Origin: Macrostomum hystrix | Taxonomy: Eukaryota; Animalia; Platyhelminthes | Direction of reading: 5' to 3' | Assembly: GCA_950097015.1 (NCBI GenBank) | Contig: CATNEN010000011.1 | Location: 5,332,001 to 5,396,000 of the forward strand | DNA: 64,000 nucleotides | Shown: in pieces, positions 4,736-64,000 of the stretch | Layout: each line of letters starts with the position of its first letter | Numbering within the stretch: the first letter of the stretch is position 1 | Program-made: the position numbers and the translations under genes | The notes under the pieces: generated by a model | What the model saw: the letters and a program-made list of their open reading frames with translations, nothing else | Database searches by the model: none | Told to the model about the DNA's origin: nothing

Positions 4736-4753
4736 GTGGCATCGCAAGCAGTC

Positions 4754-20599: not shown

Positions 20600-21595
20600 T
20601 ATATTCTGTACTATATCCTCTCTCCTCTCTTCTCTCCTCTCTGCTATCTTCTCTCTCCTATCTCCTCTCTCCTATCCCCTATATCCTATCTCCTATCTCC
20701 TATCTCGTATATCCTCTCTCCTATCTCCTCTCTCCTATATCCTATCTCCTCTCTCCTATCTCCTATCTCCTCTCTCTGCTATCTCCTCTCTCCTCTCTCC
20801 CACTCTCTCTCTCCCTCTCTCCCTATCTCCTCTCTCCTATATCCTCTCCTCTCTCCTATCTCCTATCTCCTATCTCCTATCCCCTATATCCTATCTCCTA
20901 TCTCCTATATCCTCTCTCCTATCTCCTCTCTCCTATATCCTCTCTCCTATATCCTCTCTCCTCTCTCCTATCTCCTATCTCCTATCTCCTATATCCTCTC
21001 TCCTATCCCCTATATCCTATCTCCTATCTCCTATCTCCTATCTCCTCTCTCCTATATCCTCTCTCCTATATCCTCTCTCCTATATCCTCTCTCCTCTCTC
21101 CTATCTCCTATCTCCTATCTCCTATATCCTCTCTCCTATCCCCTATATCCTATCTCCTATCTCCTATCTCCTATATCCTCTCTCCTATCTCCTATCTCCA
21201 ATCTCCTATATCCTCTCTCCTATCCCCTATATCCTATCTCCTATCTCCTATCTCCTCTCTCCTATATCCTCTCCTCTCTCCTATCTCCTATCTCCTATCT
21301 CCTATCCCCTATATCCTATCTCCTATCTCCTATATCCTCTCTCCTATCTCCTCTCTCCTATATCCTCTCTCCTATATCCTCTCTCCTCTCTCCTATCTCC
21401 TATCTCCAATCTCCTATATCCTCTCTCCTATCCCCTATATCCTATCTCCTATCTCCTATCTCCTATATCCTCTCTCCTATCTCCTCTCTCCTATCTCCCT
21501 CTCTCTGCTATCTCCTCTCTCCTCTCTCCTATCTCCTATCTCCTATCTCCTCTCTCCTATATCCTCTCTCCTATCTCCTCTCTTCTCCACCTCTC
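20600..21595. repeat. Nearly G-free C/T/A simple repeat (7-bp ATCTCCT-type units)
   Basis: Direct inspection; the 396-aa L/S/P/Y ORF is an artefact. Confidence 0.95.
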
Positions 21596-21726
21596 TGCCT
21601 TAGTCTATTGTTCTCACAGACTTTCGCCCTGGTAAAACCACAATTTTACTGAACTTTTGACAAGCCTTTGCCACAAGCCTCTAAAAATAATTTTATAACC
21701 TAAAAAAGTTTTCGTCAATTTTTCAG

Positions 21727-32774: not shown

Positions 32775-33665
32775 AAGCAAGAAGTGGATATTGCAAAGTG
32801 AGAAGTTGATATTGGAAAGTGAGAAGTGGATATTGGAAAGTGAGAAGTTGATATTGGAAAGTGAGAAGTGGATATTGGAAAGTGTGAAGTTGATATTGGA
32901 AAGTGAGAAGTGGATATTGCAAAGTGAGAAGTGGATATTGGAAAGTGAGAAGTTGATATTGGAAAGTGAGAAGTGGATATTGGAAAGTGTGAAGTTGATA
33001 TTGGAAAGTGAGAAGTGGATATTGCAAAGTGTGAAGTTGATATTGGAAAGTGAGAAGTGGATATTGCAAAGTGAGAAGTGGATATTGGAAAGTGAGAAGT
33101 TGATATTGGAAAGTGAGAAGTGGATATTGGAAAGTGTGAAGTTGATATTGGAAAGTGAGAAGTGGATATTGGAAAGTGTGAAGTTGATATTGGAAAGTGA
33201 GAAGTGGATATTGCAAAGTGTGAAGTTGATATTGGAAAGTGAGAAGTGGATATTGCAAAGTGAGAAGTGGATATTGGAAAGTGAGAAGTTGATATTGGAA
33301 AGTGAGAAGTGGATATTGCAAAGTGAGAAGTTGATATTGGAAAGTGAGAAGTGGATATTGCAAAGTGAGAAGCTGATATTGGAAAGTGAGAAGTTGATAT
33401 TGCAAAGTGAGAAGTGGATATTGGAAAGTGTGAAGTTGATATTGGAAAGTGAGAAGTGGATATTGGAAAGTGAGAAGTGGATATTGGAAAGTGAGAAGTG
33501 GATATTGGAAAGTGAGAAGTTGATATTGCAAAGTGAGAAGTTGATATTGGAAAGTGAGAAGTTGATATTGCAAAGTGAGAAGTTGATATTGGAAAGTGAG
33601 AAGTGGATATTGGAAAGTGAGAAGTGGATATTGCAAAGTGTGAAGTTGATATTGGAAAGTGAGAA
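32775..33665. repeat. 21-bp minisatellite (GATATTGGAAAGTGAGAAGTG)
   Basis: About 42 units; ORFs with 7-aa period in several frames are artefacts. Confidence 0.97.
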
Positions 33666-34184
33666 ATAATAGAAATATGAGTAATGGATATTGGAAGCGA
33701 GAAGTCAGAACAGGAAGTGGTCATGAGGTCACGGGCCAAGTTTAACTGACTTCGGACAAAGAAGCACAAAGTATTCTTTATTCATTGTATAGATATTGTT
33801 TGTAGATTATCATTCAGAACTATAATTTGAAGAGGTCCGACAGAAATTGTTTCCGCTCGAAAGAAAAGAATGTAAGAATTGATTGGCAGGTTGACGGAGG
33901 CACAAAGACTTGCTGTGGATAAGATATAGGTGTCATCTTTGTTCAACGGACAGCGTTGGTCATTGAGTCTGTGATGCCTTAAACAGTCAGGTTAGTCAGT
34001 AACACTAAATATTGTTTAGTTAGCACCGTACGGTGTGAATTAGGGCTATCACAGTGGTCCATCTCATCGCTAGCAAAAGATCCCAAGGACCTCTGCCACT
34101 CAAGTGTAAAGTAATTTCTACGATCGACAAAGGCATGGAATTCTGCGATTCTGCGATTTTGAATTATTGTGGGCGATAAGCTGA

Positions 34185-42100: not shown

Positions 42101-42883
42101 CCAAATTTTCGCTGGTGTAGCCAATGTGGCAATGGTCTGGTGCTGGGTGAGATCATGCTGGTCTTGAAGTTCCAGTGTCCTGATCCTGATTGTCTGGCCT
42201 ACACATGCAAGGACTGTGGGAAGCCTTGGGAAGACCAGCACGATGGCCTTGACTGTGAACAGTTTGAACAATGGCAAAGGGAAAATGATCCAGATTATCA
42301 GGAAAAGGGAATCGGATTCTTCCTGCAGGCCAACGGCATCCAATGTCCAAACTGTCGCTTCCAGTATGCTCTTGCCAAGGGTGGCTGTCTGCATTTCACC
42401 TGCAGGCAGTGCCGCTTCCAGTTTTGTGCCGGTTGCAACGGCCAATTTGAAATTGTTCAGGGCAGAGGCCTGAAGTGCAAACATCCAAGAGACTGTCTGT
42501 TCTACCTGAGAGACTTTGGCGTGGCTCGACTGCAGCAGCTGCTCATTGCTCACAAAGTAGAGTTCGAGACTGATATCCAGCCAGCAGTTGAGCATTGCGA
42601 AGTGATGGAGCAGAAGGAGATGGAAGGCAAGGGCTTATCTGATGAGCCGTGCGGAATCCAGGTGAATACTGGACAGGCGAACCTGTGCGAGAAGCACTAC
42701 ATTGAGTACCTTGTATCACTGGTGAACAAGCACAAGCTGGACCCTGTAAGCGTGATGGAGGAAGGTGAGCTGAGAGGAGTCTGCGTTCGGCACGACATCG
42801 ACTGTTCCGGTGTGGGCGAAAACAATTTGGTTGGACTGCAAGCTCTGATTCTTGGAAAAGTGCCGCTTAATGTGGGCAATTGA
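39182..42883 (+). CDS. RNF31: HOIP/RNF31 orthologue, full length (PUB, B-box, Q-rich, 2 NZF, UBA, RING1-IBR-RING2, LDD); array copy 1
   Basis: PUB-like N-terminus ending LAEELTQVIRGTHP; B-box CDLC...LCENCDSRWHNHPDRRVH; NZF WSCSACTLLNPNSRNKCSAC; IBR FRWCSQC; RING2 LAKGGCLHFTCRQC; LDD HPRDCLFYLRD...KHYIEYLVSLVNKHKLDP. Confidence 0.95.
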   Translation: MAQARPLPPIPNSAELSSRVMGGVALRNARSDLLEAIRESRQLDFADLLELDLSAKYKLVDARSALARDKKSAEDVKRNCLYLRNKLKHLLHPLKDRPPDWNEMQTNFCQYLPGVEQLLQRIGFVQQGSLYVITQQTLSQEALADTLVDLYLLAEELTQVIRGTHPLGAKLLPAGGQKPNGPTAGIHEKMNIMQQKLNQMCDLCGETSATIVCLESHCSKKRLCENCDSRWHNHPDRRVHKRRNIAAAAGVNAVKLIPPNAIAAVQLNSGVIKVVSNSQAVSYKSQLGLMGNHGPARLQPPTSANEAQAVKYPEPDVILPRNFALPKPPPKPDQQQKHQYQQQKDQSQQQLNLQRQHQEQQQHQEQQKLQRQQQQQQQQQQLEQQKLQLQRLQQKQQQEHSEADERVMRLNEFMKSLKPIDGDRAVSVPAGDIFRPPSPEETFYDCPELPEPQPKAQPTPKPRQTKPVKLSPVPATPVDVHRVRPQSPPSPPRPVTIELPEDNCWNCPFCTALNSIDETKLLKSNRVVCVVCGQSNDNKEIIDKVKMAKQRQEEKPSSNFEQPKQAAEPVQVPSGAEQVLSNDQEWSCSACTLLNPNSRNKCSACESDRPIFNYAKRGPAKARPAIARLQSPKAQAAANLQLIQLLKDIETAGTDGRLAQLYLVTTADEETPSEVGFHGWEKKNWPDLIEQIGRDVARALQEMHAGVANVATRPSFDDLAASVLENPCDLENAIQVCAQRHVQKVAWIARHCPELLQSVEVDIDLQNDLSKVFQAANEQAFKYFAEHLFSKNAAKAPAAPIFRKMNSSEAAHYCLMAEFDLRKFNDAETLFHLMRETEFEKYDIEDLAEAAKNCGESCDYIDLARKYLNNQCSACLSEYPKHKLLPMASCQCELCLECFYNFVTENARNNKHVTDLHCRMCETPNANQVEELESHFSILLLQIKSFQHPELRFDEADVDLVEKKITEWNLIRDPNFRWCSQCGNGLVLGEIMLVLKFQCPDPDCLAYTCKDCGKPWEDQHDGLDCEQFEQWQRENDPDYQEKGIGFFLQANGIQCPNCRFQYALAKGGCLHFTCRQCRFQFCAGCNGQFEIVQGRGLKCKHPRDCLFYLRDFGVARLQQLLIAHKVEFETDIQPAVEHCEVMEQKEMEGKGLSDEPCGIQVNTGQANLCEKHYIEYLVSLVNKHKLDPVSVMEEGELRGVCVRHDIDCSGVGENNLVGLQALILGKVPLNVGN

Positions 42884-44769: not shown

Positions 44770-46674
44770 GCTGCAGATGCTAGCAAACGCGGCGCTTTGT
44801 CGCCTCGCCGCCCGAAGCTGGGTGTCGCTGATCAGCGCGCCAGCTGGCGTTGTCGCCACTGCACCTTCGAAAACCGTCTGGCTGAGACGAAACGAGCTCC
44901 CGTATCGGGCCGCCTCATTTGCGGCGTCTGCGGCAAGTCGTCCGGGCGCAACGGCTCTAACCTGGCTGCTGCGACTACTGCAGCTGAAACAGTCAGTCCT
45001 GTTGAAGATGGCGACTGTCCGCTCTGCCTGGAGTCGCATCGGCTGCTGCTGGCAATTCCTCTGTGCGGCTGCCGAGTCTGCTGCGACTGTCTGCGCCGAT
45101 TCGTTAGTGTAGGCCTGCGCAGCCACAGCTCCGTGACGCGCCTGGCCTGTCCGTTGTGCGACCGGCCGGATCCGGACACCCTTGCCGACGCCGAATGCGA
45201 GTACTTTCCGCAGCTGCGGAGCCTCCTTGCGCCTCGGCTGGAGCCGGAGATGCTGCGTCTGCTAGACGAGAGGCTGCGCGACTGGCGACTGGAGCTGAGC
45301 CAGAACTTCATGTGGTGCAGCGGTTGCGCCTTCGGCTTCGAAGTTGACGTCGACATTCGGGTGTCCAAAGTGCGCTGCCCGCACTGCGGCAAGGAGACGT
45401 GCAGGAAGTGCGGCCAGGCCTGGCACGAGAAGCACCGTGGCGTGAGCTGCCAGCAGTTCGGGTCGTGGCTGCAGCGGACTGACTTGGCACAGCGCGGTCT
45501 GACGCAGTTCCTTGAGAGCCGAGGCAGCAAGTGCCCGAAGTGCGGCTTCCAGTTCGAGCTGTCTCGTGGCGGCTGTCTTCACCTGAAGTGCTTGGAGTGC
45601 AGCGCGGAGTTCTGCAGCGACTGCGGCGGCCTGTTTGTTCGCACTGAGAGCAAGGGCCTGCACTGCCAGCACGGCTCGGAGTGCATCGAGAAGTTCAGAG
45701 ACTGGCCGATCAAGCGGCTGCGGCAGGCGGCGTCAGAGCGGGGCGTTCAGCTGACGATGTCGGGCGCAGCTGGGAGCTCCGGCGGTCGGTGCCGCCTCCA
45801 GGAGCAGAAGGAGACGAGCAGCGGTCTTTCGGACGTGGAGTGCGGCAGGCCGGCGGTCGAGGCCGGGCTGTGCGAGGCGCACTTTAAGGAGGCCCTCGTC
45901 AGCGCCATGCGGCGGCCTGACCGGCGGCTGTCGCTGCCGACCTTGGCTGAGGCGTCTGCGGCCAAGCAGCCCTGTGAGGCTGCCCTGTCACCAGACTTGA
46001 TCCAGATGATGGCTCGCCTGCCGCCGCCGCTTCAACCAACTTCTGCGCCGCAGCAACGCCCATCAGCTGCTCAGCGGGAGTCGTGGGTGTGCAGCCTATG
46101 CCGGTCTGTGAACTCTCCGGGACCCCAAGGTTCTCGCGCCAGCTGCCAGCTGTGCGACTCGCCCGCCTTCTCTGATGGGCCGTCACTTACGGCCCCGATG
46201 CCGCCGCCGCCGCCGCCTCCCATGGCGCCTTCTTCACTGCGTTATCTGTCCTCACCTGTTATTAGCTGCTTGGCAAGATCGCCTTCGGCTAACGGACTAT
46301 CTCGTCCGCCGCTGCCGACGCCTCAGTCTCTGAATCAAATTCAGCGCCAGCAGCAGCAGTTTCAAGGCCCACAAATACAACCGCTACAGTTTTGGTCATC
46401 TTCGCAAACAATGATGCCAATGCAGCCGTTTCAGCCAATGCAGCCGTTTCAGCCAGTGCAGCCATTTCAGCCAGTGCAGCCGTTTCAGCCAATGCAGCCG
46501 TTTCAGCCAATGCAGCCGTTTCAGCCAGTGCAGCCGTTTCAGTCAGTGGAGCCGTTTCAGCCAATGCCTCCTTTGATGTCTTTTGAAGCAATGCAGTCAT
46601 CACAACCAATGCAGCCGGTGCATTTAATGTGTTCGAGTCAGTCTTCGAAGCAGAGCCTAGCCAAGCCAAACTAA
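44770..46674 (+). CDS. HOIP-like copy 2: NZF-RING1-IBR-RING2-LDD-NZF plus Pro/Gln tail; no in-frame ATG at its start
   Basis: WRCRHCTFEN...CGVC, CPLC RING1, FMWCSGC IBR, LSRGGCLHLKC, CIEKFRDW, QEQKET...CEAHFKEAL, WVCSLC NZF. The frame is open from the phase-0 acceptor TTTCAG at 44769. Confidence 0.88.
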   Translation, partial: AADASKRGALSPRRPKLGVADQRASWRCRHCTFENRLAETKRAPVSGRLICGVCGKSSGRNGSNLAAATTAAETVSPVEDGDCPLCLESHRLLLAIPLCGCRVCCDCLRRFVSVGLRSHSSVTRLACPLCDRPDPDTLADAECEYFPQLRSLLAPRLEPEMLRLLDERLRDWRLELSQNFMWCSGCAFGFEVDVDIRVSKVRCPHCGKETCRKCGQAWHEKHRGVSCQQFGSWLQRTDLAQRGLTQFLESRGSKCPKCGFQFELSRGGCLHLKCLECSAEFCSDCGGLFVRTESKGLHCQHGSECIEKFRDWPIKRLRQAASERGVQLTMSGAAGSSGGRCRLQEQKETSSGLSDVECGRPAVEAGLCEAHFKEALVSAMRRPDRRLSLPTLAEASAAKQPCEAALSPDLIQMMARLPPPLQPTSAPQQRPSAAQRESWVCSLCRSVNSPGPQGSRASCQLCDSPAFSDGPSLTAPMPPPPPPPMAPSSLRYLSSPVISCLARSPSANGLSRPPLPTPQSLNQIQRQQQQFQGPQIQPLQFWSSSQTMMPMQPFQPMQPFQPVQPFQPVQPFQPMQPFQPMQPFQPVQPFQSVEPFQPMPPLMSFEAMQSSQPMQPVHLMCSSQSSKQSLAKPN

Positions 46675-50230: not shown

Positions 50231-50652
50231 GTCAAAAAATTGCAGTAATTTTCTGTAATAACCTCAGTGATTCACGCACTTAATTTTTTATCGTATTATT
50301 TGCTCTTCCAAAGACCATCTCAGCTAGTAGGGCAGTTGACTCCGGGGCGACCAGTTAGACATTTATCTACTCAAGTTTATTACTCGTAGCAATGAAATTG
50401 TAATTTTCACATTTTATCATCCTTTGAATCTATGCATGGTAGTACTCGTAAATTATAAACTCACCATTGTCAAGGTATTTATTTGAGTCCCAAATATTTC
50501 TGAAAGCTAATGTTCTCAATAAATTTTTTGGTTCACAAAATATGAGCGTGCTTGAATTTTTCCTGCTATTTACAAACAGCTTTACTATTAGTAGTATCTT
50601 TAAAATGTTAACAATAAACGTTTTACAATTTTCAGAGTCTTGGAGGCAAGAA

Positions 50653-52554
50653 ATGTCCAACGGAATGTTCAATGGGACACTTGAATGGCAATGCCAGTTC
50701 TGCACTTTTATCAATTCGAGTGCGAATGCCTTGCACCTGGCTTCCAATAGTCGCATTGCGTGCGAAATGTGCGGAAAGACGTCCTTGGGCACGGAGGTGA
50801 AGTGGCAGCAGCCATTCCAAGCGGTAGGCCAGCTTCAACCACCGGATCTGGAGCCGACTGAGTCCAGTCAGCTAGAAGCTCGCAGATTCAAGCTAATTGC
50901 CGATCGAGAACGGCACCACATGCTTGAGCTGGCCGGTTTGCAAACATCTCCAGCGGTTCAAGGAGCAGCTGCAGCTGCAGCTTCAAGGAGCATACTTGGC
51001 GGGGACAAACCGTTTGCCCGATTTTCTTTGACTCGACAGAGCGACAGAGGCTATGCGACAGAGCGACAGAGATACCGAGAAAATAGCGTAGACTTGACCA
51101 GTTTTGCTTGCCCTGCTGAAGCCGTGCGGTACGATGGTTCGCCAGTAGATGTCACGATAGCCCCGACGGCGAAGGGAGTCTGGCGAAGAAATGTGAAAGT
51201 GCATTCACGACGAAAATCCAATCAACAATCTGCCGCTGCTACAGTGGCTTCCGCCACTGCGGAGTGTCCGGTGTGTCTTGAGAAGAAGCCGCCTCTGAAG
51301 GTGCCATTGTGCGGCTGTTCTGTGTGCAGCGAGTGCTTGTGCCAGCACATCGAGGTGCGGCTTCACAATGACAGCTCGGTGTCCGGACTGACCTGTCCAG
51401 TGTGCGTCAAGCTGGATGATCAGGCTCTGACGGACATCTTTTGCGAGTACTTTCCGCAGCTGCGGAGTTTACTGGTCGGTCGATTAAAGCCGCCTATAAT
51501 GGAGCAGCTGGACGAGCGGCTTCGCGACTGGCGGCTGAAGCTGACAAACAACTTCTGCTGGTGCAGCGGCTGCTCGAACGGGTTCGAGGTGTCGGAACAC
51601 TACGACAGGCAGGTGCGCTGCCCGCACTGCGGCAAGGAGACGTGCAGGAAGTGCGGCCAGGCCTGGCACGAGAAGCACCGTGGCGTGAGCTGCCAGCAGT
51701 TCGGGTCGTGGCTGCAGCGGACTGACTTGGCACAGCGCGGTCTGACGCAGTTCCTTGAGAGCCGAGGCAGCAAGTGCCCGAAGTGCGGCTTCCAGTTCGA
51801 GCTGTCTCGTGGCGGCTGTCTTCACCTGAAGTGCTTGGAGTGCAGCGCGGAGTTCTGCAGCGACTGCGGCGGCCTGTTTGTTCGCACCGAGAGCAAGGGC
51901 CTGCACTGCCAGCATGGCTCAGAGTGCATCGAGAAGTTCAGAGACTGGCCGATCAAGCAGCTGCGGCAGGCGGCGTCAGAGCGGGGCGTTCAGCTGACGA
52001 TGTCCGGCGCAGCTGGGAGCTCCGGCGGTCGGTGCCGCCTCCAGGAGCAGAAGGAGACGAGCAGCGGTCTGGCGGACGCGGAGTGCGGCAGGCCGGCGGT
52101 CGAGGCCGGGCTGTGCGAGGCGCACCTCAAGGAGGCCCTCGTCAGCGCCATGCGGCGACTTCAAGAAAGCAAATCGAAGTCGACCACTTTGCAACCGCCT
52201 CCACCTCCGCATCCAGATCCAAGATCCATTCTGAGACGGCCCAAGCAGCTGGACCTTTCAGCGCTCAGTAATAAACTGTCTGAGTCGCCTAGTCGCGAAC
52301 TATTTCGAAGCCGATACGCCCGGGAGGTGTCTGGTGCAGCGTCTGGAGCTAGCGACGAGCTGACTTGCCCGCACTGCACCTCCGTGACTCCGTCAGCTCC
52401 TCGCGTGTCTGGCGGTAGCCGCCTGCTGTGCAATGTCTGCGGCAAGACCACGCCCAACCAGTGCCGCAGTGGCGGCGCCAACATTGACGCTGACCTGGCT
52501 GCCTTAAACAGCTACCTTGTGGGTGAGGACGAGGGCATCCAGATCTTTAATTAA
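50653..52554 (+). CDS. HOIP-like copy 3: NZF-RING1-IBR-RING2-LDD-NZF-like finger
   Basis: ATG at 50653 after the acceptor TTTTCAG at 50635. Contains WQCQFCTFIN...CEMCGK, CPVC RING1, FCWCSGC, LSRGGCLHLKC and a C-terminal CPHC...CNVCGKT finger. Confidence 0.9.
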   Translation: MSNGMFNGTLEWQCQFCTFINSSANALHLASNSRIACEMCGKTSLGTEVKWQQPFQAVGQLQPPDLEPTESSQLEARRFKLIADRERHHMLELAGLQTSPAVQGAAAAAASRSILGGDKPFARFSLTRQSDRGYATERQRYRENSVDLTSFACPAEAVRYDGSPVDVTIAPTAKGVWRRNVKVHSRRKSNQQSAAATVASATAECPVCLEKKPPLKVPLCGCSVCSECLCQHIEVRLHNDSSVSGLTCPVCVKLDDQALTDIFCEYFPQLRSLLVGRLKPPIMEQLDERLRDWRLKLTNNFCWCSGCSNGFEVSEHYDRQVRCPHCGKETCRKCGQAWHEKHRGVSCQQFGSWLQRTDLAQRGLTQFLESRGSKCPKCGFQFELSRGGCLHLKCLECSAEFCSDCGGLFVRTESKGLHCQHGSECIEKFRDWPIKQLRQAASERGVQLTMSGAAGSSGGRCRLQEQKETSSGLADAECGRPAVEAGLCEAHLKEALVSAMRRLQESKSKSTTLQPPPPPHPDPRSILRRPKQLDLSALSNKLSESPSRELFRSRYAREVSGAASGASDELTCPHCTSVTPSAPRVSGGSRLLCNVCGKTTPNQCRSGGANIDADLAALNSYLVGEDEGIQIFN

Positions 52555-53602: not shown

Positions 53603-55667
53603 ATGGCTGGTGTATCCGTGTTCGGGTCAGCTGATCTCGACCAATGGCTTTGCAGTCGGTGCACAGCGTTGAAGCCGACGCCACCGTCCGTCATGAATAA
53701 TTCTGGCCCAGTTTTAGTCATCTGCGATCAATGCAATTTCATCACTGAGCTGTTGTTTCCTGCTGCTGCTGATACTCCGCCGCAGCTACCGGCGCCAATA
53801 AAACAGGAGGTGGCCGAACTGATGCAGCGTCTGTCTATTCAAGACTGGGTCGCCGAACGTTTTTAGTCCTGAAAATTATCGAAAGTTCTGCGGCTTCCCA
53901 GTAGCTGACCTTGTGTTGGCTATTGAATCGTGCGGTGGACTCGCCTACGATGACGATGTACTCATGCGTCGGCTGAATGGGCATTGCAGCCACTGCCGAG
54001 AAAGGGTGCCGCGCGACCGACTGGTTGCTATGGTAACGTGCGAGTGCGAGCTGTGCTCAACATGCTTTATTCAGTTTCTTGCATCGGAGGACAAGGACAC
54101 CGGCGGCCGCATGCGCAAATGTCCGACCTGCCGCGTAGCCTGGGCGACAGAATCTGAAATTCTTCGCCAGCTATTGCTGGCCGCTGCCCCAATGATTGGT
54201 GCTGAGGCTGCTTATCAGGCTCTTGCGGAGGTTGATAAAGACAAGCCTGTTGATCAAAAGTTCAGGCGACTGCGTCTCGATTTTAACAGCCGAGGAAACA
54301 ATTCAATCAATCTCTCCCAGAATCAGCAGCGTCCGCTGCATCCGTTGCTAAGTGTATTGAGTGGCAATACAGACAGCGAAATTCAAGATCTAGTTTTTCA
54401 TCAGTGTAATGCCGAAGAAAGTGCTCTGTACGGCGAGTACAACCTTAAGACTATGACTCAGGCAACCAATTTTCGCAGCCTCCGCGCTCAGGCCGAGTTT
54501 CGCGACTGCAACCCGCTGGACCTGGCTGAGGCGGTTCGCAGCTGTGGCGATCAGCCAGACTTTGTGGACTTTGTTAGCGCCCACCTGAACAACCAGTGCC
54601 CAATCTGCTTCGATAACTTTCCCAGACACAAGATGCTCCAGATGGCCTCCTGCCAGTGCAAGCTCTGCTTCCTCTGCTTCCGCAATTTTGTCACCACCAG
54701 TCTGGACAACAATGACCACGTGTCGCATCTGCAGTGTCCGATCTGCAACACACCGGACTGTAAGGATGTCGGACAGTTGGAGACTCACTTCCAGTTGCTG
54801 ATGCTCCAAGTGACCACCTTGAATGATGCCGAGATCCGCTTCGATGCAGAGAAGGTCAGCGTCCTCGATCAGAGGCTTCGGGACTGGAACTTGACCCGGG
54901 ATCCGAGCTTTCGCTGGTGCAGCCACTGTCCAAACGGAGTCCAGCTGCCTGCTCAGCTTCGAGGTCGCAAGTTCAGGTGCGACCAGTGCTTGAAGCACAC
55001 GTGCAAAGACTTCAGGAAGCAATGGCAAGAGCAGCACGAGGGCATCGGGTGCGAGCAGTTCCAGCAGTGGCTGGTTGCGAATGACGCCGACTTTCAGGAG
55101 AGAGGCGTGGCTGCATTTCTGCAGAGCAGCGGCATCGAGTGTCCGAAGTGCAAGTTCAAGTACGCGCTGGCCAAGGGTGGCTGCATGCACTTTACCTGCA
55201 GGCAGTGCCGGGCTGAGTTCTGCTCAGGCTGTGGCGGCTTCTTCATCCGAGTGAACGGACGCGGGCTGATGTGCGAGCATCCGAGAGACTGTCTGTACTA
55301 CCTCAGAGACTTTGACGTCCGGAGCTTGCAGAAACTGCTGAGCGACCACGGCGTTCGGCACGAGACGTTGGCTGAGCAGGCCGCTGACGGTGGCGTCTGC
55401 GGAGTGATGGAGCAGAAGGAGACTGTGAGTGGCAGTCTGGTGGATGAAGCCTGTGGCACAGCAGTTAAGGGGCAATCTAGCTTGTGCACAAAGCACTACA
55501 CAGAGTACCTGGTGTCTCTGATCAACAGACACCGCCTGGACCCAGTAGAAGTGATGGACGCTGTCCTGCTGAGGGGTCTGTGTGCCAAATACGGAATTCA
55601 GTTCGATACGGAAGCGTCTGAGAATGAGGAGTTCATGCGGACGCTAGTCATGGAGAAAGAACCCTAA
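53603..55667 (+). CDS. HOIP-like copy 4: NZF-RING1-linker-RING1-IBR-RING2-LDD, split by a 1-nt frameshift at 53860-53866 (may be a pseudogene)
   Basis: The 87-aa ORF ends CGT TTT TAG and the +1 frame continues SPENYRKFCGFPVADLVLAIESCGG into the 584-aa ORF. RING2 LAKGGCMHFTC and LDD HPRDCLYYLRD are intact. Confidence 0.8.
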
Positions 55668-56542: not shown

Positions 56543-58744
56543 ATGGCCGCTTTTGAGCCGAATCGCCAACAGGAGAGAGAGCCACAGAAGAGGCTGCCGA
56601 GATGCAGCATCTGCCACAGACGAGGCGCCTGCCTGGAGGCTGGCTGCAGCTTCGGTCTGATGTGCGAGTGCTGTCATTCCGACTGGCACAGTATCTGCCA
56701 GCACCGAGTGGAGCGGCTGCCGCTTCCTCAGGCAATGCCTCGCTACGACCAGTGGCTGACTGAGAGGCTGACGGAGGTGAAACAGTTGAGCGACTTCAGG
56801 CAGTTCTCAGACTCTGATCTCATTGACTCCATTCAGTCATGCTGTGGACAGGCGTTTGATGCAATGGTACTTCTGAGTCACCTGAGGAGCCGGTGTGGCA
56901 AGTGCTCCAGTCCGATGCCTAAGCACAAACTGGTTGGCATGGCAACGTGTGAGTGCGAGCTTTGCTCTGCGTGCTACCGCGGCTTTCTGTCTGGTCTGCC
57001 GGACCAACTTAGATGTCCAGCCTGTGGAGTGGCATTCTCTGCTGACCCAGTCGCTGCGAACCTGACGCAGATTCTTGTCCGCGAAATGGAGTGCGAAATA
57101 GGCAAAGATGATACCTTAAGGTTGCTGAAAATGCTTGAGGACTGGGGAGAAGGAGCAGGAGAGCAGGATAGAATGCTAAGAGAGCAACAGGAGACTCAAC
57201 AGAGAGAGCAACAGGAGACTCTACAGAGAGAGCAACAGGAGACTCAACAGAGAGAGAAGCCCTTTTCATATGAAGAGCAGCAACGATTTCTAAACAAACT
57301 GCAGCATTTTAAAAAGAAAGACATTGCAGGTGGTGAAATTCAGCAGGTGAGACAGCAGACAGAGCAACAGGAGAGACAGCACAGAGAGCAACAGGAGAGA
57401 CTGCAGAGAGAGCAACAGGAGAGACTACAGAGAGAGCAACAGGAGAGACTGCAGAGAGAGCAGCAGGAGAGACTACAGAGAGAGCAACAGGAGACTCTAC
57501 AGAGAGAGCAACAGGAGACTCAACAGAGAGAGCAACAGGAGAGACTGCAGAAAGAGCAACATGAGAGACTTCAGAAGAAGCAACAGGAGAGACTGCAGAA
57601 AGAGCAACTGGAGAGACTGCAGAAAGAGCAACAGGAGAGACTGCAGAAAGAGCAACAGGAGAGACTGCAGAAAGAGCAACTGGAGAGACTGCAGAAAGAG
57701 CAACAGGAGAGACTGCAGAAAGAGCATCAGGAGAGACTGCAGAAAGAGCAACAGGAAAGACTGCAGAAAGAGCAACTGGAGAGACTGCAGAAAGAGCATC
57801 AGGAGAGACTGCAGAAAGAGCAACAGGAAAGACTGCAGAAAGAGCAACTGGAGAGACTGCAGAAAGACCAACAGGAGAGACTGCAGAAAGAGCATCAGGA
57901 GAGACTGCAGAAAGAGCAACAGGAGAGACTACAGAGAGAGCAACAGGAGAGACTGCAGAAAGAGCAACAGGAGAGACTGCAGAAAGAGAAACAGGAGAGA
58001 CTGCAGAGAGAGCAACAGGAGAGACTGCAGAAAGAGCAACAGGAGAGACTGCAGACTGCGCAGACTCACCAGTGTGCCGCTAGTTATAGTAAACCTGGCC
58101 CAATTAAAACTCTCGGAAAGCTGCAAAGTCAGATGATGGAGTTGCTGCAATCTGAGCTGAGGTGTCCCAGGTGCAGTCGCTGCTTCGAGAGAGTCTCCAA
58201 ATCTGGTATTTCTACATTTCGCTGCTCCTGCAAGCATGAATTTTGTCCGTTTTGTTTGTCACCCTTCATCGGCTCTCACGATGGCTGCAGAATTCGTGGA
58301 TTTCATGTGCACCACCAGAGACAGTGCTTCTTCTCACTGAAGCAAGTGAAGCAGTCCACATTGATCGGCTTGCTTAGTTCTAAGAAAGTAGCCATCAATT
58401 CTGACTGCTCGTCAACAAAGAAGCAATGTCAGATTCTTGATCTCAAGCAGGAGAAAAATCAGTTGGTCGTGTTGCCATGTAACGAGAAAGTAACGCACAA
58501 TCAGCCAGGTGTATGCGACAGACACTACTGTGAGTACCTGATTCAGCTCATCAATGCGCACAGACTTGACCTGGTAGATGTTGCCAAAGAGAATGAGCTG
58601 CTGGAGATGTTCGAGAGATTCAGTTTGAGTGTTCCAGTTCCAGTAGTTTCAATGTCAAGTCCTACAGCTGCAAATAAGCAGCAAAAGTTGGCTATCTATC
58701 GAGAGCAGTTTAAGAAATTGGTGCCTCCATTCAGACCATGGTAA
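56543..58744 (+). CDS. HOIP-like copy 5: B-box-like, RING1, 8-aa repeat replacing IBR, RING2 lacking the catalytic Cys, LDD
   Basis: RING1 CGKC...MATCECELCSAC...CPAC; 28 EQQERLQ(K/R) repeats; CPRCSRCFERVSKSGISTFRCSC; LDD CDRHYCEYLIQLINAHRLD. Confidence 0.88.
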   Translation: MAAFEPNRQQEREPQKRLPRCSICHRRGACLEAGCSFGLMCECCHSDWHSICQHRVERLPLPQAMPRYDQWLTERLTEVKQLSDFRQFSDSDLIDSIQSCCGQAFDAMVLLSHLRSRCGKCSSPMPKHKLVGMATCECELCSACYRGFLSGLPDQLRCPACGVAFSADPVAANLTQILVREMECEIGKDDTLRLLKMLEDWGEGAGEQDRMLREQQETQQREQQETLQREQQETQQREKPFSYEEQQRFLNKLQHFKKKDIAGGEIQQVRQQTEQQERQHREQQERLQREQQERLQREQQERLQREQQERLQREQQETLQREQQETQQREQQERLQKEQHERLQKKQQERLQKEQLERLQKEQQERLQKEQQERLQKEQLERLQKEQQERLQKEHQERLQKEQQERLQKEQLERLQKEHQERLQKEQQERLQKEQLERLQKDQQERLQKEHQERLQKEQQERLQREQQERLQKEQQERLQKEKQERLQREQQERLQKEQQERLQTAQTHQCAASYSKPGPIKTLGKLQSQMMELLQSELRCPRCSRCFERVSKSGISTFRCSCKHEFCPFCLSPFIGSHDGCRIRGFHVHHQRQCFFSLKQVKQSTLIGLLSSKKVAINSDCSSTKKQCQILDLKQEKNQLVVLPCNEKVTHNQPGVCDRHYCEYLIQLINAHRLDLVDVAKENELLEMFERFSLSVPVPVVSMSSPTAANKQQKLAIYREQFKKLVPPFRPW

Positions 58745-59049
58745 GCATGAAAGAGACCACATTCTAGACTTCGGCCCTGCGTATTGGTTTTAATTATTTT
58801 ACCTGTCTTTTTTCAAACCAATTATATTCACTTTGCTTTCCGCGTACTTAACATTCATGTTCAACATGCATTCGTGTTTGTATCCTAACGCGATTGTTGT
58901 AGGTATGAACCTTTGTGAGAGCAAGCCCCTACTTCAGTTACTTTAATTCGTTCTTTTTTGTAATATTTGTTGTTGTTACCTTCATGTGTTCAAGTCAGCG
59001 TCTTAACTGGTGTAAAAGCTCATATTGATGTTGCTGGACGAATACTGTG

Positions 59050-59730
59050 AGCGTCTTATTTCACGATAAGAAGAGAAGAGATGGTTCAATGGTGTAGAAC
59101 TGTGCTAAAGGCTCACAAGACTCACAGAACTCCCGGGGCTTACATATCGAATTATTATAATCGAATTAAAAACTCTGCTATCCGGGACCATTTGCTAGGT
59201 TGCGATAGTTGTTGTAATAAGGAGCCACTTGAACTGTTCAAAGTTGTTGACACGTGTAGGCAAGATTACAAACTGACCATTCTTGAAGCCATGTACATCA
59301 AGGCCCTCAAGCCAAACCTTAATGTCCAATTAGCGGGGAACGGTTCAAGCCAACAGCTCCAAGTGTTCTGACGTATGAGGCACGCTCTCTCTGTGCTGTG
59401 TGTGCGTTCCTCTCCAACCTCTTGATCATGGTTCGCCTTGTGACCTGCCCATCGGACTTTAACTCACAATGTACAACAACCTACTTTTAAATACCTGCGT
59501 TTTCGTTTTTCAATAAATCGACCCTGTCCATCGGACTTTAACTCACAATGTACAACAACCTACTTTTAAACACCTGCGTTTTCGTTTTTCAATAAATCGA
59601 CCCTGTCCATCGGACTTTAACTCTCAATGTACAACAACCTACTTTTAAACACCTGCGTTTTCGTTTTTTAATAAATCGACCCTGACGATGTGCGCTTAGG
59701 ACGTAAAGCTTCGGAATTTTAAACATATGT
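59050..59730 (+). mobile_element. Penelope-like element 3-prime fragment (GIY-YIG tail plus pLTR-like tandem repeats)
   Basis: SAIRDHLLGCDSC...FKVVD...KLTILEAMYIKALKPNLNVQL is typical of PLE endonuclease C-termini. Confidence 0.8.
59449..59686. repeat. 79-bp tandem repeat, 3 copies
   Basis: CCATCGGACTTTAAC starts at 59449, 59528 and 59607. Confidence 0.95.
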
Positions 59731-60459
59731 TGGCAATTTCATTTCTGTTCCTGTTGCTTATTAACGGAGTTACCTTACCAAATAATAAATTCGTAACAGG
59801 GTCGATGTTTCATATTTTTTATTTTAAGTCAAGCTGTGTTGTCCTTTTGAAAACTTTTCAGATTTTCTTGTCCTGACAACATTTATGATGAAAATTTAGA
59901 ATAATTGTCATAGTTCTTTGCTTAGAACTTAGCGGAAACACAGGAAGTTGTAGAAAACCGCAGAGCATAAGATCTTAGAAGCACCTCTTCCTCGCTCCTA
60001 CTTATCCCCGTTCCTAAAGATACAGATTTTTTTAATTGAGAAAATTTTTCTTGTTGAAACAATATCTTTAAATAGCGACTGACGTCAGTGACGTATCTGA
60101 ACAGACACTTCTACGTTGTCCCAGAGTGATAATTAAGGTACGAACTGCAGTAAAAATAGTTATTGCACTTTTAGTGTGATATAAAACGAGGCTAGTCACG
60201 GCAGAAAATCGCGTGCGTGGCGTGGCAGTGAATGTACATTCAATGTACACACGCAGCCTGGGTGCTGGTAGGGCTGAGAGGAAACTGACTTAACGGCTTC
60301 TAAGGCGGGCAAGGCAATTTCTCAGAGTGTCTTCACTCACAATGAAAACTTGTGAATCTCAATAAATACCTCTGCTGAATGTATTTATTAGAAGCAGACT
60401 TTAGTGAAAGTGAGCGGTTTCAAACTCGAACGCAACCAACCTCTAATCTCTGTTGCAGC

Positions 60460-62088
60460 ATGAGCGGCACTGTCGAAGCTGGCTCTCATGTCACCTGGCA
60501 ATGTGGCCAATGCACCTGCGACAATGACTTCTTGGGCTTCTCCCAGCCTGTCAGCGGTGGCACCATTCACTGCGAGGTGTGCGAAACTGGTAACAGTTTA
60601 AGGAACATAGCGAATCAGGTGAACGCCAGAACTGGTCAGTGCTTGTGCATCAGGTGCACACTACTCAATGACAGAGGCAGACATTACTGTTCTGCCTGCG
60701 GCTCATGGCTTGTATTTGTGTCAGAGCCAGAGCAGCTATTCCTATCAGATTTTTCCAGTACGAGCTCTGTGAGTTCCGCTTCTGAGCTGTTCGAAGTCCA
60801 CCATCACGAGACGGATAATGAGTCTGAGCTAGTTGCCCTGATGACTGAGTTCCACTTAATTAAGCTTGAACATGCGTCGAATTTTCGCAGCCTCCGTGCT
60901 CAGGCCGGGTTTCGCGACTGCAACCCGCTGGACCTGGCTGAGGCGGTTCGCAGCTGTGGCGATCAGCCAGACTTTGTGGACTTTGTTAGCGCCCACCTGA
61001 ACAACCAGTGCCCAATCTGCTTCGATAACTTTCCCAGACACAAGATGCTCCAGATGGCCTCCTGCCAGTGCAAGCTCTGCTTCCTCTGCTTCCGCAACTT
61101 TGTCACCACCAGTCTGGACAACAATGACCACGTGTCGCATCTGCAGTGTCCGATCTGCAACACACCGGACTGTGAGGATGTCGGACAGTTGGAGACTCAC
61201 TTCCAGTTGCTGATGCTCCAAGTGACCACCTTGAATGATGCCGAGATCCGCTTCGATGCAGAGAAGGTCAGCGTCCTCGATCAGAGGCTTCGGGACTGGA
61301 ACTTGACGCGGGATCCGAGCTTTCGCTGGTGCAGCCACTGTCCAAACGGAGTCCGGCTGCCTACTCAGCTTCGAGGTCGCAAGTTCAGGTGCGACCAGTG
61401 CTTGAAGCACACGTGCAAAGACTGCAGGAAGCAATGGCAAGAGCAGCACGAGGGCATCGGGTGCGAGCAGTTCCAGCAGCGGCTGGTTGCGAATGACGCC
61501 GACTTTCAGGAGAGAGGCGTGGCTGCATTTCTACAGAGCAGCGGCATCGAGTGTCCGAAGTGCAAGTTCAAGTACGTGCTGGCGAAGGGTGGCTGCATGC
61601 ACTTTACCTGCAGGCAGTGCCGGGCTGAGTTCTGCTCAGGCTGTGGCGGCTTCTTCATCCGAGTGAACGGACGCGGGCTGATGTGCGAGCATCCGAGAGA
61701 CTGTCTGTACTACCTCAGAGACTTTGACGTTCGGAGCTTGCAGAAACTGCTGAGCGACCACGGCGTTCGGCACGAGACTTTGGCTGAGCAGTCCGCTGAC
61801 GGTGGCGTCTGCGGAGTGATGGAGCAGAAGGAGACTGTGAGTGGCAGTCTGGTGGATGAAGCCTGCGGCAGAGCAGTTGAGGGGCAATCTAGTTTGTGCA
61901 CAAAGCACTACACAGAGTACCTGGTGTCTCTGATCAACAGACACCGCCTGGACCCAGTAGAAGTGATGGACGCTGCCCTGCTGAGGGAGGTTTGCAGGCG
62001 TCACGGCATTAGCGTTGATGGCAAGATTTCAAATGATTGTGCCGCTCTTCGGGGCTTGATTTCCCAACGAGTTCCATTGCGCCGTTGA
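60460..62088 (+). CDS. HOIP-like copy 6: 2 NZF-RING1-IBR-RING2-LDD
   Basis: ATG at 60460 after the acceptor CTGTTGCAG. Contains WQCGQC...CEVC, CIRCTLLN...CSAC, LAKGGCMHFTC, HPRDCLYYLRD, and ends VPLRR*. Confidence 0.92.
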   Translation: MSGTVEAGSHVTWQCGQCTCDNDFLGFSQPVSGGTIHCEVCETGNSLRNIANQVNARTGQCLCIRCTLLNDRGRHYCSACGSWLVFVSEPEQLFLSDFSSTSSVSSASELFEVHHHETDNESELVALMTEFHLIKLEHASNFRSLRAQAGFRDCNPLDLAEAVRSCGDQPDFVDFVSAHLNNQCPICFDNFPRHKMLQMASCQCKLCFLCFRNFVTTSLDNNDHVSHLQCPICNTPDCEDVGQLETHFQLLMLQVTTLNDAEIRFDAEKVSVLDQRLRDWNLTRDPSFRWCSHCPNGVRLPTQLRGRKFRCDQCLKHTCKDCRKQWQEQHEGIGCEQFQQRLVANDADFQERGVAAFLQSSGIECPKCKFKYVLAKGGCMHFTCRQCRAEFCSGCGGFFIRVNGRGLMCEHPRDCLYYLRDFDVRSLQKLLSDHGVRHETLAEQSADGGVCGVMEQKETVSGSLVDEACGRAVEGQSSLCTKHYTEYLVSLINRHRLDPVEVMDAALLREVCRRHGISVDGKISNDCAALRGLISQRVPLRR

Positions 62089-62582: not shown

Positions 62583-64000
62583 ATGGCCTCAGCGCAGGTG
62601 TATTGCAGCTTCTGCGGTGACAACCCGGCCGCTGTCTATTGCGCCACTCCTGGCTGCAGCAGGAATGTGCTGTGCAATGGCTGCGACAAAATCTGGCACG
62701 GTCATCCTAATCGGAAGGGGCATATTACAGAGCCTTATAATCATCAGCAGCAACAGGCAAAGGCTGACACTCCTCTTCCACCGCCGCGATCGCCAAATCG
62801 TCCCTACCCACCGCCGCAGCGACCACCTCCCCCGCGGCCGTCATCGGCCGGCTGGCAGTGCCAGCACTGCACCTTCTTGAATGAGCCGCCTCCGACTGGT
62901 TCGGCTAAGAAAATTTGCGGCATGTGCGGCAAAACTCATGGACTGCCCCCTGCGATTGGTACAGGGAACCATCCTGATTCAAACTCCGAATGTGTAAGCT
63001 CTGAGATTGATCAAAGACCGCCAGCTCATGAGCAAACTGTTGGTACAACTGGAAGACCTGAAGACTCTGCTACAAATGTAGATGAGCTTAAAAAACAGTA
63101 TCTGCAGCATCAACAGAGACAGGGGGAAGAGAAGCCCTTTTCATATGAAGAGCAGCAACGATTTCTAAACGAACTGCAGCATTTGAAAAAGAAAGACATT
63201 GCAGGTGGTGAAATTCAGCAGGTGAGACAGCAGACAGAGCAACAGGAGAGACAGCACAGAGAGCAACAGGAGAGACTGCAGAGAGAGCAACAGGAGAGAC
63301 TGCAGAGAGAGCAACAGGAGAGACTGCAGAGAGAGCAACAGGAAAGACTACAGAGAAAGCAACAGGAGAGACTGCAGAGAGAGCAACAGGAGAGACAGCA
63401 GAGAGAGCAACAGGTGAGACAGCAGAGAGAGCAACAGGAGAGACAGCAGAGAGAGCAACAGGAGAGACTGCAGAGAGAGCAACAGGAGAGACTGCAGAGA
63501 GAGCAACAGGAGAGACTGCAGAAAGAGAAACAGGAGAGACTGCAGAGAGAGCAACAGGAGAGACAGCAGAGAGAGCAACAGGAGAGACTGCAGAAAGAGA
63601 AACAGGAGAGACTGCAGAGAGAGCAGCAGGAGAGACTGCAGAAAGGGCAACAGGAGAGACTGCAGAAAGGGCAACAGGAGAGACTGCAGAAAGAGCAGCA
63701 GGAGAGACTGCAGAGAGAGCAGCAGGAGAGACTGCAGAAAGAGCAGCAGGAGAGACAGCATTCGCAAATTCACTCTCCTTCAGACAATAGATCCGGCAAG
63801 TACGCTATTCGACAATCTGGTGGATCACATCAGAGCATCTGTGGCAGCTCCAGCAGCTGGGTTTGTGTTCACTGCACGCTTGAGAATCCAGTACCAGTTG
63901 AGCAGGGCTCTACACGAGCAGTTTGCAGCGCCTGCAACCGTTCCTCTGAACTTAATAGTGCCACATCCAATGGTGCCATGGCAGCCCGCAGTGAGACAAT
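62583..64000 (+). CDS. HOIP-like copy 7, N-terminal part (B-box, NZF, EQQERLQR repeat, NZF); open to the window end
   Basis: Translated by hand because it is absent from the ORF track (no stop in the window): MASAQVYCSFCGDNPAAVYCATPGCSRNVLCNGCDKIWHGHPNRKGH, WQCQHCTFLN...CGMCGKT, KPFSYEEQQRFL... repeat block, WVCVHCTLEN...CSACNRS. Confidence 0.85.
   Translation, partial: MASAQVYCSFCGDNPAAVYCATPGCSRNVLCNGCDKIWHGHPNRKGHITEPYNHQQQQAKADTPLPPPRSPNRPYPPPQRPPPPRPSSAGWQCQHCTFLNEPPPTGSAKKICGMCGKTHGLPPAIGTGNHPDSNSECVSSEIDQRPPAHEQTVGTTGRPEDSATNVDELKKQYLQHQQRQGEEKPFSYEEQQRFLNELQHLKKKDIAGGEIQQVRQQTEQQERQHREQQERLQREQQERLQREQQERLQREQQERLQRKQQERLQREQQERQQREQQVRQQREQQERQQREQQERLQREQQERLQREQQERLQKEKQERLQREQQERQQREQQERLQKEKQERLQREQQERLQKGQQERLQKGQQERLQKEQQERLQREQQERLQKEQQERQHSQIHSPSDNRSGKYAIRQSGGSHQSICGSSSSWVCVHCTLENPVPVEQGSTRAVCSACNRSSELNSATSNGAMAARSET

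Follow-up and report, generated by a model that had tools for sequence, protein, structure and literature searches.

HOIP-type ligases and related pseudoenzymes

To our knowledge, no enzyme other than HOIP makes Met1-linked ubiquitin chains. In the human protein (HOIP/RNF31), C885, H887 and the R935/D936 pair are needed for thioester formation, di-ubiquitin formation and acceptor presentation (PMC5135002, PMC5090701), with R935/D936 serving as the acceptor-ubiquitin pair (PMC5090701). TRIM RING E3 pseudoligases keep their domain, lack activity and are presumed to be non-catalytic (bioRxiv 10.1101/2024.10.15.614675 / PMC11992055). Single alpha-helix (SAH) domains of myosins, INCENP and drebrin (E-R/K domains) pair Glu with Arg or Lys at i/i+4, have no hydrophobic seam and act as spacers between folded domains (PMC5347031, PMC4183817, PMC5812594). 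A literature search found no paper describing an RBR pseudo-ligase, and a search for Macrostomum together with HOIP found no publication.

The window analysed here comprises 64,000 nucleotides of Macrostomum hystrix DNA (contig CATNEN010000011.1, positions 5,332,001 to 5,396,000) and carries a HOIP-like tandem array. Copy 5 of this array shares with human HOIP and Drosophila LUBEL a B-box-type zinc finger, an eight-ligand RING1, the RING2-LDD fold, the ZF2 ligands and, as predicted, the C-terminal LDD helices. It differs from both in having Ile for Cys885, Thr for His887 and K/Q for R935/D936; it is without IBR, PUB, NZF and UBA, and a 232-residue repeat lies between RING1 and RING2. The TRIM pseudoligases are a functional parallel in retaining a domain that presumably works without catalysis, but they are RING-type proteins with no covalent intermediate, whereas copy 5 is an RBR that lost its thioester Cys. 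Judged by sequence and predicted fold, copy 5 answers to the description of a fold-homologous pseudoenzyme with missing catalytic residues.

The copy 5 locus

Copy 5 is an intronless ORF on the + strand (56543-58744; Pfam PF18091, 1.9e-13), as are all features of copy 5 described below. It begins with ATG at 56543, ends with TAA at 58742 and is preceded by an in-frame TGA at 56525. The frame is open throughout (733 codons plus stop), which bears out the intact 2.2-kb ORF of the original prediction. Five other copies lie within the window, and active paralogues are encoded beside copy 5. An exact look-up of copies 1, 5 and 6 and of a neighbouring gene gave no match in the sequence collection, and word-based protein searches returned only proteins of Macrostomum lignano and zero fragments from other species.

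A RING2-LDD region without catalytic residues

The C-terminal part encodes a RING2-like domain without a nucleophile (aa 541-571, 58163-58255), a ZF1-like ligand set H-x2-C...H-x-H-H...C (aa 578-595, 58274-58327), an LDD in which K600/Q601 replace the R-D pair and the ZF2 ligands are kept (aa 596-693, 58328-58621), and a tail (58622-58741) with a Y-R-E...V-P-P motif. This motif is kept in a group of related proteins with the same substitutions, here called the dead clade. Alignment confirmed both changes first noticed in the sequence. KSGISTFRC (aa 553-561, nt 58199-58225) stands where five other window copies read KGGC(L/M)HFTC, and CFFSLKQ replaces the CL(F/Y)YLRD of the other window copies. 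A phmmer match to human RNF31 (5e-22) maps I556 to C885, T558 to H887 and K600/Q601 to R935/D936.

The LDD is retained, as proposed, according to both the Pfam match and the predicted fold. The AF2 model of the C-terminal part (pLDDT 84.9, pTM 0.81) resembles the RING2-LDD of HOIP (4ljp_A) in Foldseek, with an E-value of 9e-15 and a TM-score of 0.76. No IBR scored above threshold in Pfam, and neither the alignment nor tblastn showed the region. Structural zinc ligands are present in RING2, ZF2 and the LDD, in line with the claim that they are kept, except that one pair, in RING2, is spaced C-x-C and not C-x2-C. The ZF1-like ligands, thought to be unique to copy 5, distinguish it from the other window copies, but H-x2-C...H-x-H-H is found throughout the dead clade; at the ZF1 site C...C prevails in most of the family.

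With substitutions at the nucleophile Cys, at the His and in the R-D pair, no IBR and a HOIP-like predicted fold, copy 5 reads as a putative pseudo-ligase, as first proposed. Since there is neither nucleophile nor IBR, and about 300 helical residues lie between RING1 and RING2, we infer that the RBR relay cannot run. The evidence supports copy 5 as a HOIP-type paralogue that would be unable to carry out the thioester relay.

Copy 5 could instead still be a ligase, acting through an extra Cys in RING2 (C547) or through RING1 as a RING-type E3, but we consider this very improbable. C547 is invariant across the dead clade and does not occur in 75 other family members, the RING1 ligand positions are all kept, and pseudoenzymes with migrated catalytic residues have been described (PMC10211241). 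However, both the general-base His and the acceptor-positioning R-D pair are gone, no IBR is present and the two RINGs stand about 300 spacer residues apart; C547 itself adjoins a zinc knuckle and may compensate for the altered spacing of the C-x-C ligands. The last RING1 ligand is followed by Gly, at a point where a basic linchpin residue is usual in active RING E3s.

An old clade of Macrostomum proteins

The loss of catalytic residues had been taken as a feature of copy 5. It is instead an old, clade-wide trait, common to M. lignano proteins and to the next gene in the window. The dead clade comprises M. lignano P0001-P0003 and P0153, the next gene and copy 5, and was found only in Macrostomum by the searches made. 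The four M. lignano proteins carry the signatures KSG(V/Y)..F.C and NLK(Q/H) and are 55-58% identical to copy 5 in the dead RING2-LDD. In the tree the clade is monophyletic with 100/100 support, on a stem of 2.71 substitutions per site with short inner branches. This comparison shows that the catalytic residues were lost before the split from M. lignano.

The substitutions are rare. C-x-H occupies the catalytic site in 146 domain hits, among about 150 representatives from 1.84 billion proteins. The acceptor pair R-D is found in all of 147 aligned hits except four dead-clade rows (three from M. lignano, and copy 5), and both residues are present in 100% of 75 other family members. With the clade profile, only the P0002 cluster scored below 1e-30.

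The clade has its own invariant residues (C547, S554, K600/Q601 and D633/L634), and the former catalytic positions vary within it (I/V/Y and T/V). Between-species dN/dS against M. lignano is 0.20-0.27 for the C-terminal part, 0.32 for the N-terminal module described below and 0.16-0.17 for the canonical copy 6, although these NG86 ratios are rough because synonymous sites are saturated (dS 1.5-1.8). Among the M. lignano paralogues the ratio is 0.59-0.82, a point on the other side. The combination of invariant residues and purifying selection, with five members in two species as counted for retention, argues for a retained non-catalytic domain and not for simple decay. That a clade lacking all of these residues has held on to the fold under purifying selection points to a use of RING2-LDD other than catalysis, be it binding, regulation or competition.

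In-frame deletion and probable gene conversion

The M. lignano protein P0002 (BOX15_Mlig011956g1) is encoded by a single 1114-codon ORF, and both ends of copy 5 match it. Proteins of this type run in the order B-box, RING1, Q/E/R repeat, NZF, UBA-like region, RING1', IBR, dead RING2 and LDD, the last of which Pfam did not report in the full P0002 ORF. In P0001-P0003, unlike in copy 5, the stretch from the repeat to RING2 still holds an NZF, a UBA-like region, another RING1 and an IBR. Their repeat units also differ from those of copy 5 (REQQQ and longer units), and the proteins are unnamed hypotheticals. P0153 is a 243-residue model that holds the dead RING2-LDD only.

Homology mapping to the next gene and to a near-identical RING2-LDD copy places an in-frame deletion junction at 58066-58075. 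The post-repeat homology to the next gene stops near 58069, five unmatched bases follow (58070-58074), and homology to the RING2-LDD copy runs from 58075. The deletion took out NZF2 and the UBA-like region together with the IBR and the RING1 native to the RBR, roughly 290 codons as judged from the M. lignano counterpart. These alignments show copy 5 to be a derivative of the P0002-type architecture through in-frame deletion of NZF through IBR. The idea that the repeat replaced the IBR needs revision, since the repeat is an older family feature that lies upstream in relatives and was brought beside RING2 by the deletion. No M. lignano protein with the shortened architecture was found. Two other readings of the junction were discarded. 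The Cys of THQC is not a remnant of the IBR, as its codon arises at the deletion junction, and 58075 is not a splice acceptor, as the preceding two bases misfit (no AG at 58073-58074) and the 30 loose letters joined to it in the contigs do not occur in the window.

A unique lead-in starting EKPFSYEE (57254-57361) is common to copy 5 and the next gene and has a sharp left homology boundary in DNA identity. Over 57255-57420 copy 5 differs from the next gene (63128 onward) at two positions, an identity of about 98.8%. The co-linear match of 57253-57885 to 63128-63760 is 92.7% identical, and the repeat and C-terminal part of copy 5 are about 98.5% identical to the next gene or a similar copy. The tracts show apparent gene conversion with the next gene, which would keep the repeat and C-terminal part of copy 5 near-identical to it. 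The homology tracts stop within genes and do not extend into intergenic DNA, so segmental duplication of a unit of copy 6 plus copy 7 was rejected; gene conversion fits better.

Presence in sequencing runs

Four runs with transcriptome-sized contig sets cover 58075-59061 at 99% or more. Judged by the size of the contig sets, these are probable RNA runs. The stretch compared began at 58060, downstream of the array and 15 bases before the homology restarts at 58075. Two near-identical copies are mixed within the contigs, which therefore do not single out copy 5. Reference-type letters of copy 5 do occur at variant sites in these contigs. Expression of copy 5 is no more than probable.

The contigs also bear on a further reading, in which the short form results from an assembly mis-join or is an uncommon structural allele; we give it only a slim chance. 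Contigs of all four runs that reach 58075 continue upstream into other sequence, and none spans 58060-58074. Yet a comparison that begins 15 bases before the junction could hardly place a junction contig, and such a hole proves nothing. The other upstream sequence, absent from the window, fits the C-terminal part of the next gene. A real deletion fits better than repeat collapse because the junction sits outside the array, in unique sequence some 12 bases beyond it, has five unmatched bases and keeps the frame.

An additional B-box-RING1 module

The N-terminus of copy 5 forms a module, here module A, that no other copy in the window carries. It opens with a B-box-like zinc finger (aa 21-54, 56603-56704), a likeness to copy 1 that was judged by eye without tool alignment. 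A helical region follows (aa 68-117, 56744-56893) that lines up with the part of the paralogues preceding RING1 and for which AF2 predicts helices at 67-80, 90-101 and 104-115 with low confidence. RING1 (aa 118-161, 56894-57025) aligns to that of human RNF31 (E 3.8e-4) and keeps all eight Cys ligands (C118, C121, C136, C138, C141, C144, C158 and C161).

Downstream, a putative remnant of the RING1-IBR linker helix ends in LEDW (aa 162-204, 57026-57154). The paralogues read (L/I)(R/T)(D/E)W at the matching point, a correspondence seen by eye in a stretch that sits within a gap of the paralogue alignment. AF2 predicts helices at 170-186 and 188-237 here. Three EQQET(Q/L)QR units (aa 214-237, 57182-57253) end the module's own part.

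Module A is 61.5% identical to residues 34-215 of the P0002 ORF, in which the B-box-RING1 likewise precedes a Q/E/R-rich repeat. The claim that RING1 is kept is therefore correct as to its eight ligand positions but not as to its origin. By homology, the RING1 still present comes from an additional N-terminal B-box-RING1 module, also found in P0002, and not from the original RBR.

A candidate single alpha-helix spacer

Tandem Repeats Finder reports a 24-nt unit in 29.7 copies at 57344-58055, with 92% matches and 0% indels, and a second, smaller array of 3.2 copies at 57179-57256. In the codon register the main array amounts to 29 in-frame units of 8 aa with consensus EQQERLQK (aa 274-505, 57362-58057), one more than the 28 first counted. 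A higher-order 72-nt pattern is present.

The spacer contains 107 opposite-charge i/i+4 pairs, where shuffled sequences have 27.8 +/- 4.1. Of 31 hydrophobic residues, no more than 12 occupy a/d positions of a heptad, and the periodicity shows no power at 3.5-3.67. The dense charge pairing and the absent heptad signal agree with the suggestion of a single alpha-helix rather than a heptad pattern. In the full-length AF2 model the region forms long helices at 266-404 and 415-503, a prediction that suits a coiled coil as well as a single helix. That model is poor overall (pLDDT 60.9) and weak for the N-terminal module, and its arrangement of the two heads is uninformative.

Copy 5 resembles the SAH domains of myosins, INCENP and drebrin in its i/i+4 pairing and lack of a hydrophobic seam. 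It differs in composition, with about half of its residues charged (E+D+K+R about 49%), a third Gln (34%), and Leu (13%) every eight residues, and like-charge i/i+3 pairs occur in each unit. In its charge pattern the repeat matches a single alpha-helix, and on sequence grounds it is a candidate for one.

Constraint or decay

The C-terminal part of copy 5 differs from the nearest copy by seven non-synonymous and two synonymous changes, a site ratio of 3.8. At least three residues (S605, Q654 and C663) depart from those conserved in the rest of the clade. The dN/dS comparison proposed earlier gives a divided answer, as the clade yields 0.20-0.27 between species and the variants of copy 5 against its nearest copy look neutral.

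These variants fit a copy 5 that is a functionless young derivative, a useful dead-clade gene crippled by the deletion from NZF2 to IBR. Its frame would owe its survival only to the recency of the event and to the fact that changes in the number of 24-nt units preserve it. The 72-nt pattern, which shows recent unequal exchange, and the failure to find the shortened architecture among M. lignano proteins point the same way. Nevertheless, nine differences are too few to separate neutrality from constraint. The deletion is exactly in frame, 733 codons lack a stop, the zinc ligands are all kept, module A is carried in the window by copy 5 alone with a dN/dS of 0.32, and reference letters occur in the probable RNA contigs. 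We regard loss of function as unlikely, though it deserves serious weight.

Possible role

Our preferred explanation, which we hold to be probable, is that copy 5 is a non-catalytic derivative of the retained clade, likely a two-headed adaptor or regulator. One head would be the E2-binding-type RING1 and the other a remodelled ubiquitin- or ligand-binding RING2-LDD. The spacer, if a single alpha-helix, would hold them about 35 nm apart. Copy 5 may, we speculate, modulate its active neighbours in the array.

More tentatively, Macrostomum may keep lineage-specific HOIP-derived RBR pseudo-ligases beside active linear-ubiquitin ligases, a broader proposal that we find possible but somewhat doubtful. 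RING2-LDD would then have become a reader or regulator through the changes R-D to K-Q and EQ to DL and a new invariant Cys, mounted on Q/E/R helical rulers reshuffled by deletion and gene conversion. If true, RBR-derived pseudoenzymes would here be described as a class for the first time, with copy 5 as the minimal two-headed form. The value of copy 5 itself is lower, as it may be a recent and possibly neutral derivative. RNAi knock-down and transgenesis are in use in M. lignano, a laboratory model. The locus offers a natural set of domain-deletion variants and shows tandem paralogues trading modules by apparent conversion and in-frame deletion.

HOIP-like genes in a tandem array

Seven HOIP/RNF31-like genes, each a single ORF, lie in tandem on the + strand of the window: copy 1 (39182-42883), copy 2 (44797-46674), copy 3 (50467-52554), copy 4 (53913-55667), copy 5 (56543-58744), copy 6 (60379-62088) and copy 7, which begins at about 62583 and continues past the window end. 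Copy 1 (1233 aa) has Pfam matches to a RanBP-type zinc finger, IBR, RING2 and LDD and, by reading of its sequence, B-box- and UBA-like parts. The ORF of copy 5 is intact as claimed: it has 733 codons and a TAA stop (58742), and an in-frame TGA lies 5' of it (56525).

In the window alignment, RING2 of copy 5 reads KSGISTFRC where the other copies have KGGC(L/M)HFTC, and CFFSLKQ stands in place of CL(F/Y)YLRD. Alignment to human RNF31 with phmmer places I556 at C885, T558 at H887 and K600/Q601 at R935/D936. C885 is the thioester cysteine of HOIP and H887 is required for di-ubiquitin formation (PMC5135002), while R935/D936 present the acceptor ubiquitin (PMC5090701). The motif alignment and residue mapping thus confirm the original prediction that the catalytic Cys and His are lost. 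RING1 and the structural zinc ligands are likewise kept: RING1 shows all eight ligand positions in alignment to human HOIP RING1, and among the structural ligands one pair is spaced C-x-C, not C-x2-C. Pfam detects the LDD of HOIP (PF18091, 1.9e-13) and no IBR above threshold. The AlphaFold2 model of aa 512-733 is of high confidence (pLDDT 84.9, pTM 0.81; 79 family sequences in the alignment) and matches HOIP RING2-LDD structures (4ljp_A, E 9e-15, TM 0.76). Copy 5 belongs to the HOIP family by descent and fold but lacks four defining features of a HOIP ligase, namely the IBR, the Cys, the His and the R-D pair.

Age and conservation of the catalytic loss

The proteins closest to copy 5 are four from Macrostomum lignano (P0001-P0003 and P0153; 55-58% identity in the C-terminal part). 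All four have KSG(V/Y)..F.C, NLK(Q/H), the C-x-C spacing and an H-x2-C...H-x-H-H set. The catalytic loss is therefore an old trait of a whole clade, called here the dead clade. ZF1-like ligands, thought to be unique to copy 5, do distinguish it from the active window copies, but the H-x2-C...H-x-H-H set is common to the entire dead clade. Active copies 1-4 and 6 lack the two Cys of the family C...C insert (ZF1) between RING2 and the LDD, whereas the dead clade retains an H-x2-C version, so either the dead clade split off before the Cys were lost or ZF1 was remodelled in the active copies.

A maximum-likelihood tree recovers the dead clade as monophyletic (100/100); its stem measures 2.71 changes per site, and the branches after it are short. 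A HMMER search of 1.84 billion representatives with a dead-clade profile returned 183 family members at E <=0.001, the cluster of P0002 being the only one to score <1e-30. Among the matches listed, C-x-H occurs in 146 domain matches, and the acceptor pair R-D in all 147 aligned matches except four dead-clade rows. Outside the dead clade, just two full-length proteins among these matches depart from the catalytic pair: P0098 (His to Met) and P0100 (Cys to Ser), a HOIP-like RBR-LDD protein of the spider Caerostris darwini (GIX67345.1). In P0100 Ser replaces the catalytic Cys and Leu the His, and the acceptor motif L-R-D is intact; it may be a HOIP paralogue that became non-canonical or dead independently.

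Residues C547, S554, P569/F570, K600/Q601 and D633/L634 are invariant in the dead clade and missing from 75 other members, and the former catalytic positions vary within it (I/V/Y and T/V). NG86 dN/dS ratios against M. lignano, which are rough because synonymous sites are saturated, are 0.20-0.27 for the C-terminal part of copy 5, 0.32 for its N-terminal module and 0.16-0.17 for canonical copy 6 against its counterpart (68% identity). This is the pattern of catalysis lost, rapid change and a domain then kept for another use. Pseudo-ligases have been described among TRIM RING E3s (10.1101/2024.10.15.614675); for the terms tried, our literature searches found neither a description of an RBR pseudo-ligase nor a paper on HOIP in Macrostomum. 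The dead clade is the notable part, to which copy 5 contributes a mapped deletion and a module history.

An in-frame deletion beside the repeat

The M. lignano gene for P0002 (NIVC01000691.1, 9962-13306) is one uninterrupted ORF of 1114 codons; the deposited model (976 aa, partial) treats some of the repeat array as intronic and leaves it out. The gene encodes, in order, a B-box, helices, RING1, a linker, ~370 residues of Q/E/R repeats, an NZF, a UBA-like region, a second RING1, IBR, dead RING2 and LDD. Copy 5 matches both ends (residues 34-215 at 61.5% and 888-1111 at 54% identity) and is missing the stretch from NZF to IBR. Positions 57253-57885 of copy 5 are co-linear with 63128-63760 of copy 7 (92.7% identity); the unique lead-in before the array is ~98.8% identical, with a sharp left boundary, and homology past the array extends to about 58069. 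From 58075 on, public-run contigs show a near-identical copy with different upstream sequence. Because the window does not contain that upstream sequence, the near-identical copy probably represents the C-terminal part of copy 7. The five bases between (58070-58074) match neither flank, and the frame is preserved.

The homology to P0002 and copy 7, together with this junction, shows that, contrary to the original proposal, the repeat was not a substitute for the IBR. Instead, an in-frame deletion took out NZF2, the UBA-like region, the RING1 of the RBR itself and the IBR, bringing a pre-existing repeat beside RING2. The surviving RING1 is, by the same comparison, part of the added N-terminal B-box-RING1 module that P0002 also has.

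Tandem Repeats Finder reports a main array of 29.7 copies of a 24-nt unit (57344-58055, 92% matches, no indels) and an upstream array of 3.2 copies (57179-57256); three EQQET(Q/L)QR units precede the main array. The predicted in-frame EQQERLQK repeat is there, with 29 units in codon register (aa 274-505) rather than 28. A higher-order three-unit pattern points to recent unequal exchange. The repeat is 34% Q, 24% E, 25% R+K and 13% L, with Leu each 8 residues and 107 opposite charges at i/i+4 (27.8 +/- 4.1 in shuffles). No heptad register fits it, periods 3.5-3.67 carry no power, and AlphaFold2 predicts helices at 266-404 and 415-503. This supports the suggestion of a single alpha-helix rather than a heptad coiled coil. 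The array would span ~35 nm if it forms one helix. Its charge fraction is low compared with classical SAH (PMC5347031, PMC5812594), and like charges occur at i/i+3. Relatives carry Q/E/R repeats of other unit lengths in the same place, and the N-terminal half of copy 1 includes a Q-rich stretch. Composition and position are conserved, and the unit sequence is not.

Expression and recent change

Four runs from one study contain 68-72% of sampled words. Their whole contig sets of only 42-47 Mb, with a local depth of 35-47, suggest transcriptomes rather than genomes. Run contigs cover 58075-59061 at >=99% identity and mix, as mosaics, reference sequence with that of the near-identical copy. No contig spans the junction, but the stretch compared started just 15 bases 5' of it. 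Expression of copy 5 itself is therefore only probable. A mis-join or rare structural allele would also leave the junction uncovered; with the frame kept across it, we regard this as improbable.

Copy 5 differs from the near-identical copy by 7 non-synonymous and 2 synonymous changes (site ratio 3.8), at three sites departing from a residue conserved in the rest of the dead clade. These recent changes are few and neutral-looking, as expected of a recently crippled copy in neutral drift. Such drift is a lesser possibility.

3' of the stop, at 58913-58999, each of the four runs has one contig form that lacks an 85-nt stretch and one that includes it; the stretch ends TG..AG, which is no intron signature, and represents an insertion/deletion difference between alleles or copies. 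Over 59032-59162 run contigs reach only ~96% identity, diverging beyond it, and further contigs join at 59229, which suggests a multi-copy element downstream of copy 5. A 96-codon ORF with no Pfam match (59081-59371) and a tandem repeat of a 79-nt unit (59444-59684, 3.1 copies, 97% matches) lie nearby.

Predicted role

Nucleophile, general base, acceptor pair and IBR are all absent from copy 5, and RING1 and RING2 lie ~300 helical residues apart; both folded heads are conserved. We infer that the RBR relay cannot run. Retained activity through C547 or RING1 is highly unlikely with so much of the relay gone. An E2-binding-type RING1 would instead be tethered to a remodelled RING2-LDD and may act on the active ligases encoded alongside. 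We thus favour, with some reserve, a two-headed adaptor or regulator, possibly acting on these adjacent ligases.

Probable gene conversion and other features

A tract of 1108 nt (60880-61987 in copy 6; 98.2% DNA identity) is common to copies 4 and 6 and ends within both genes, so gene conversion among tandem copies is the likely cause of their near-identity; it would also explain the likeness of paralogues within each species. Copy 4 (53645-55667) is a chimera: its 5' end retains weak traces of an NZF-like part and a RING1 from a gene of dead-clade type (38% identity to P0001), and a full RBR-LDD near-identical to copy 6 follows. Its listed ORF begins with GTG at 53913. Copy 7 (62583-64000) is P0001-like, with a B-box, an NZF, the lead-in as in copy 5, ~27 EQQERLQ(K/R) units and a second NZF; its C-terminal part falls beyond the window.

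The window also encodes a retroelement-like ORF with a CCHC knuckle and protease-like part (4736-6760, + strand) and a 536-codon ORF (2746-4356, - strand). Long simple-repeat arrays at 20413-21603 and 32714-33769 have open frames on several strands and are probably satellites, not genes.
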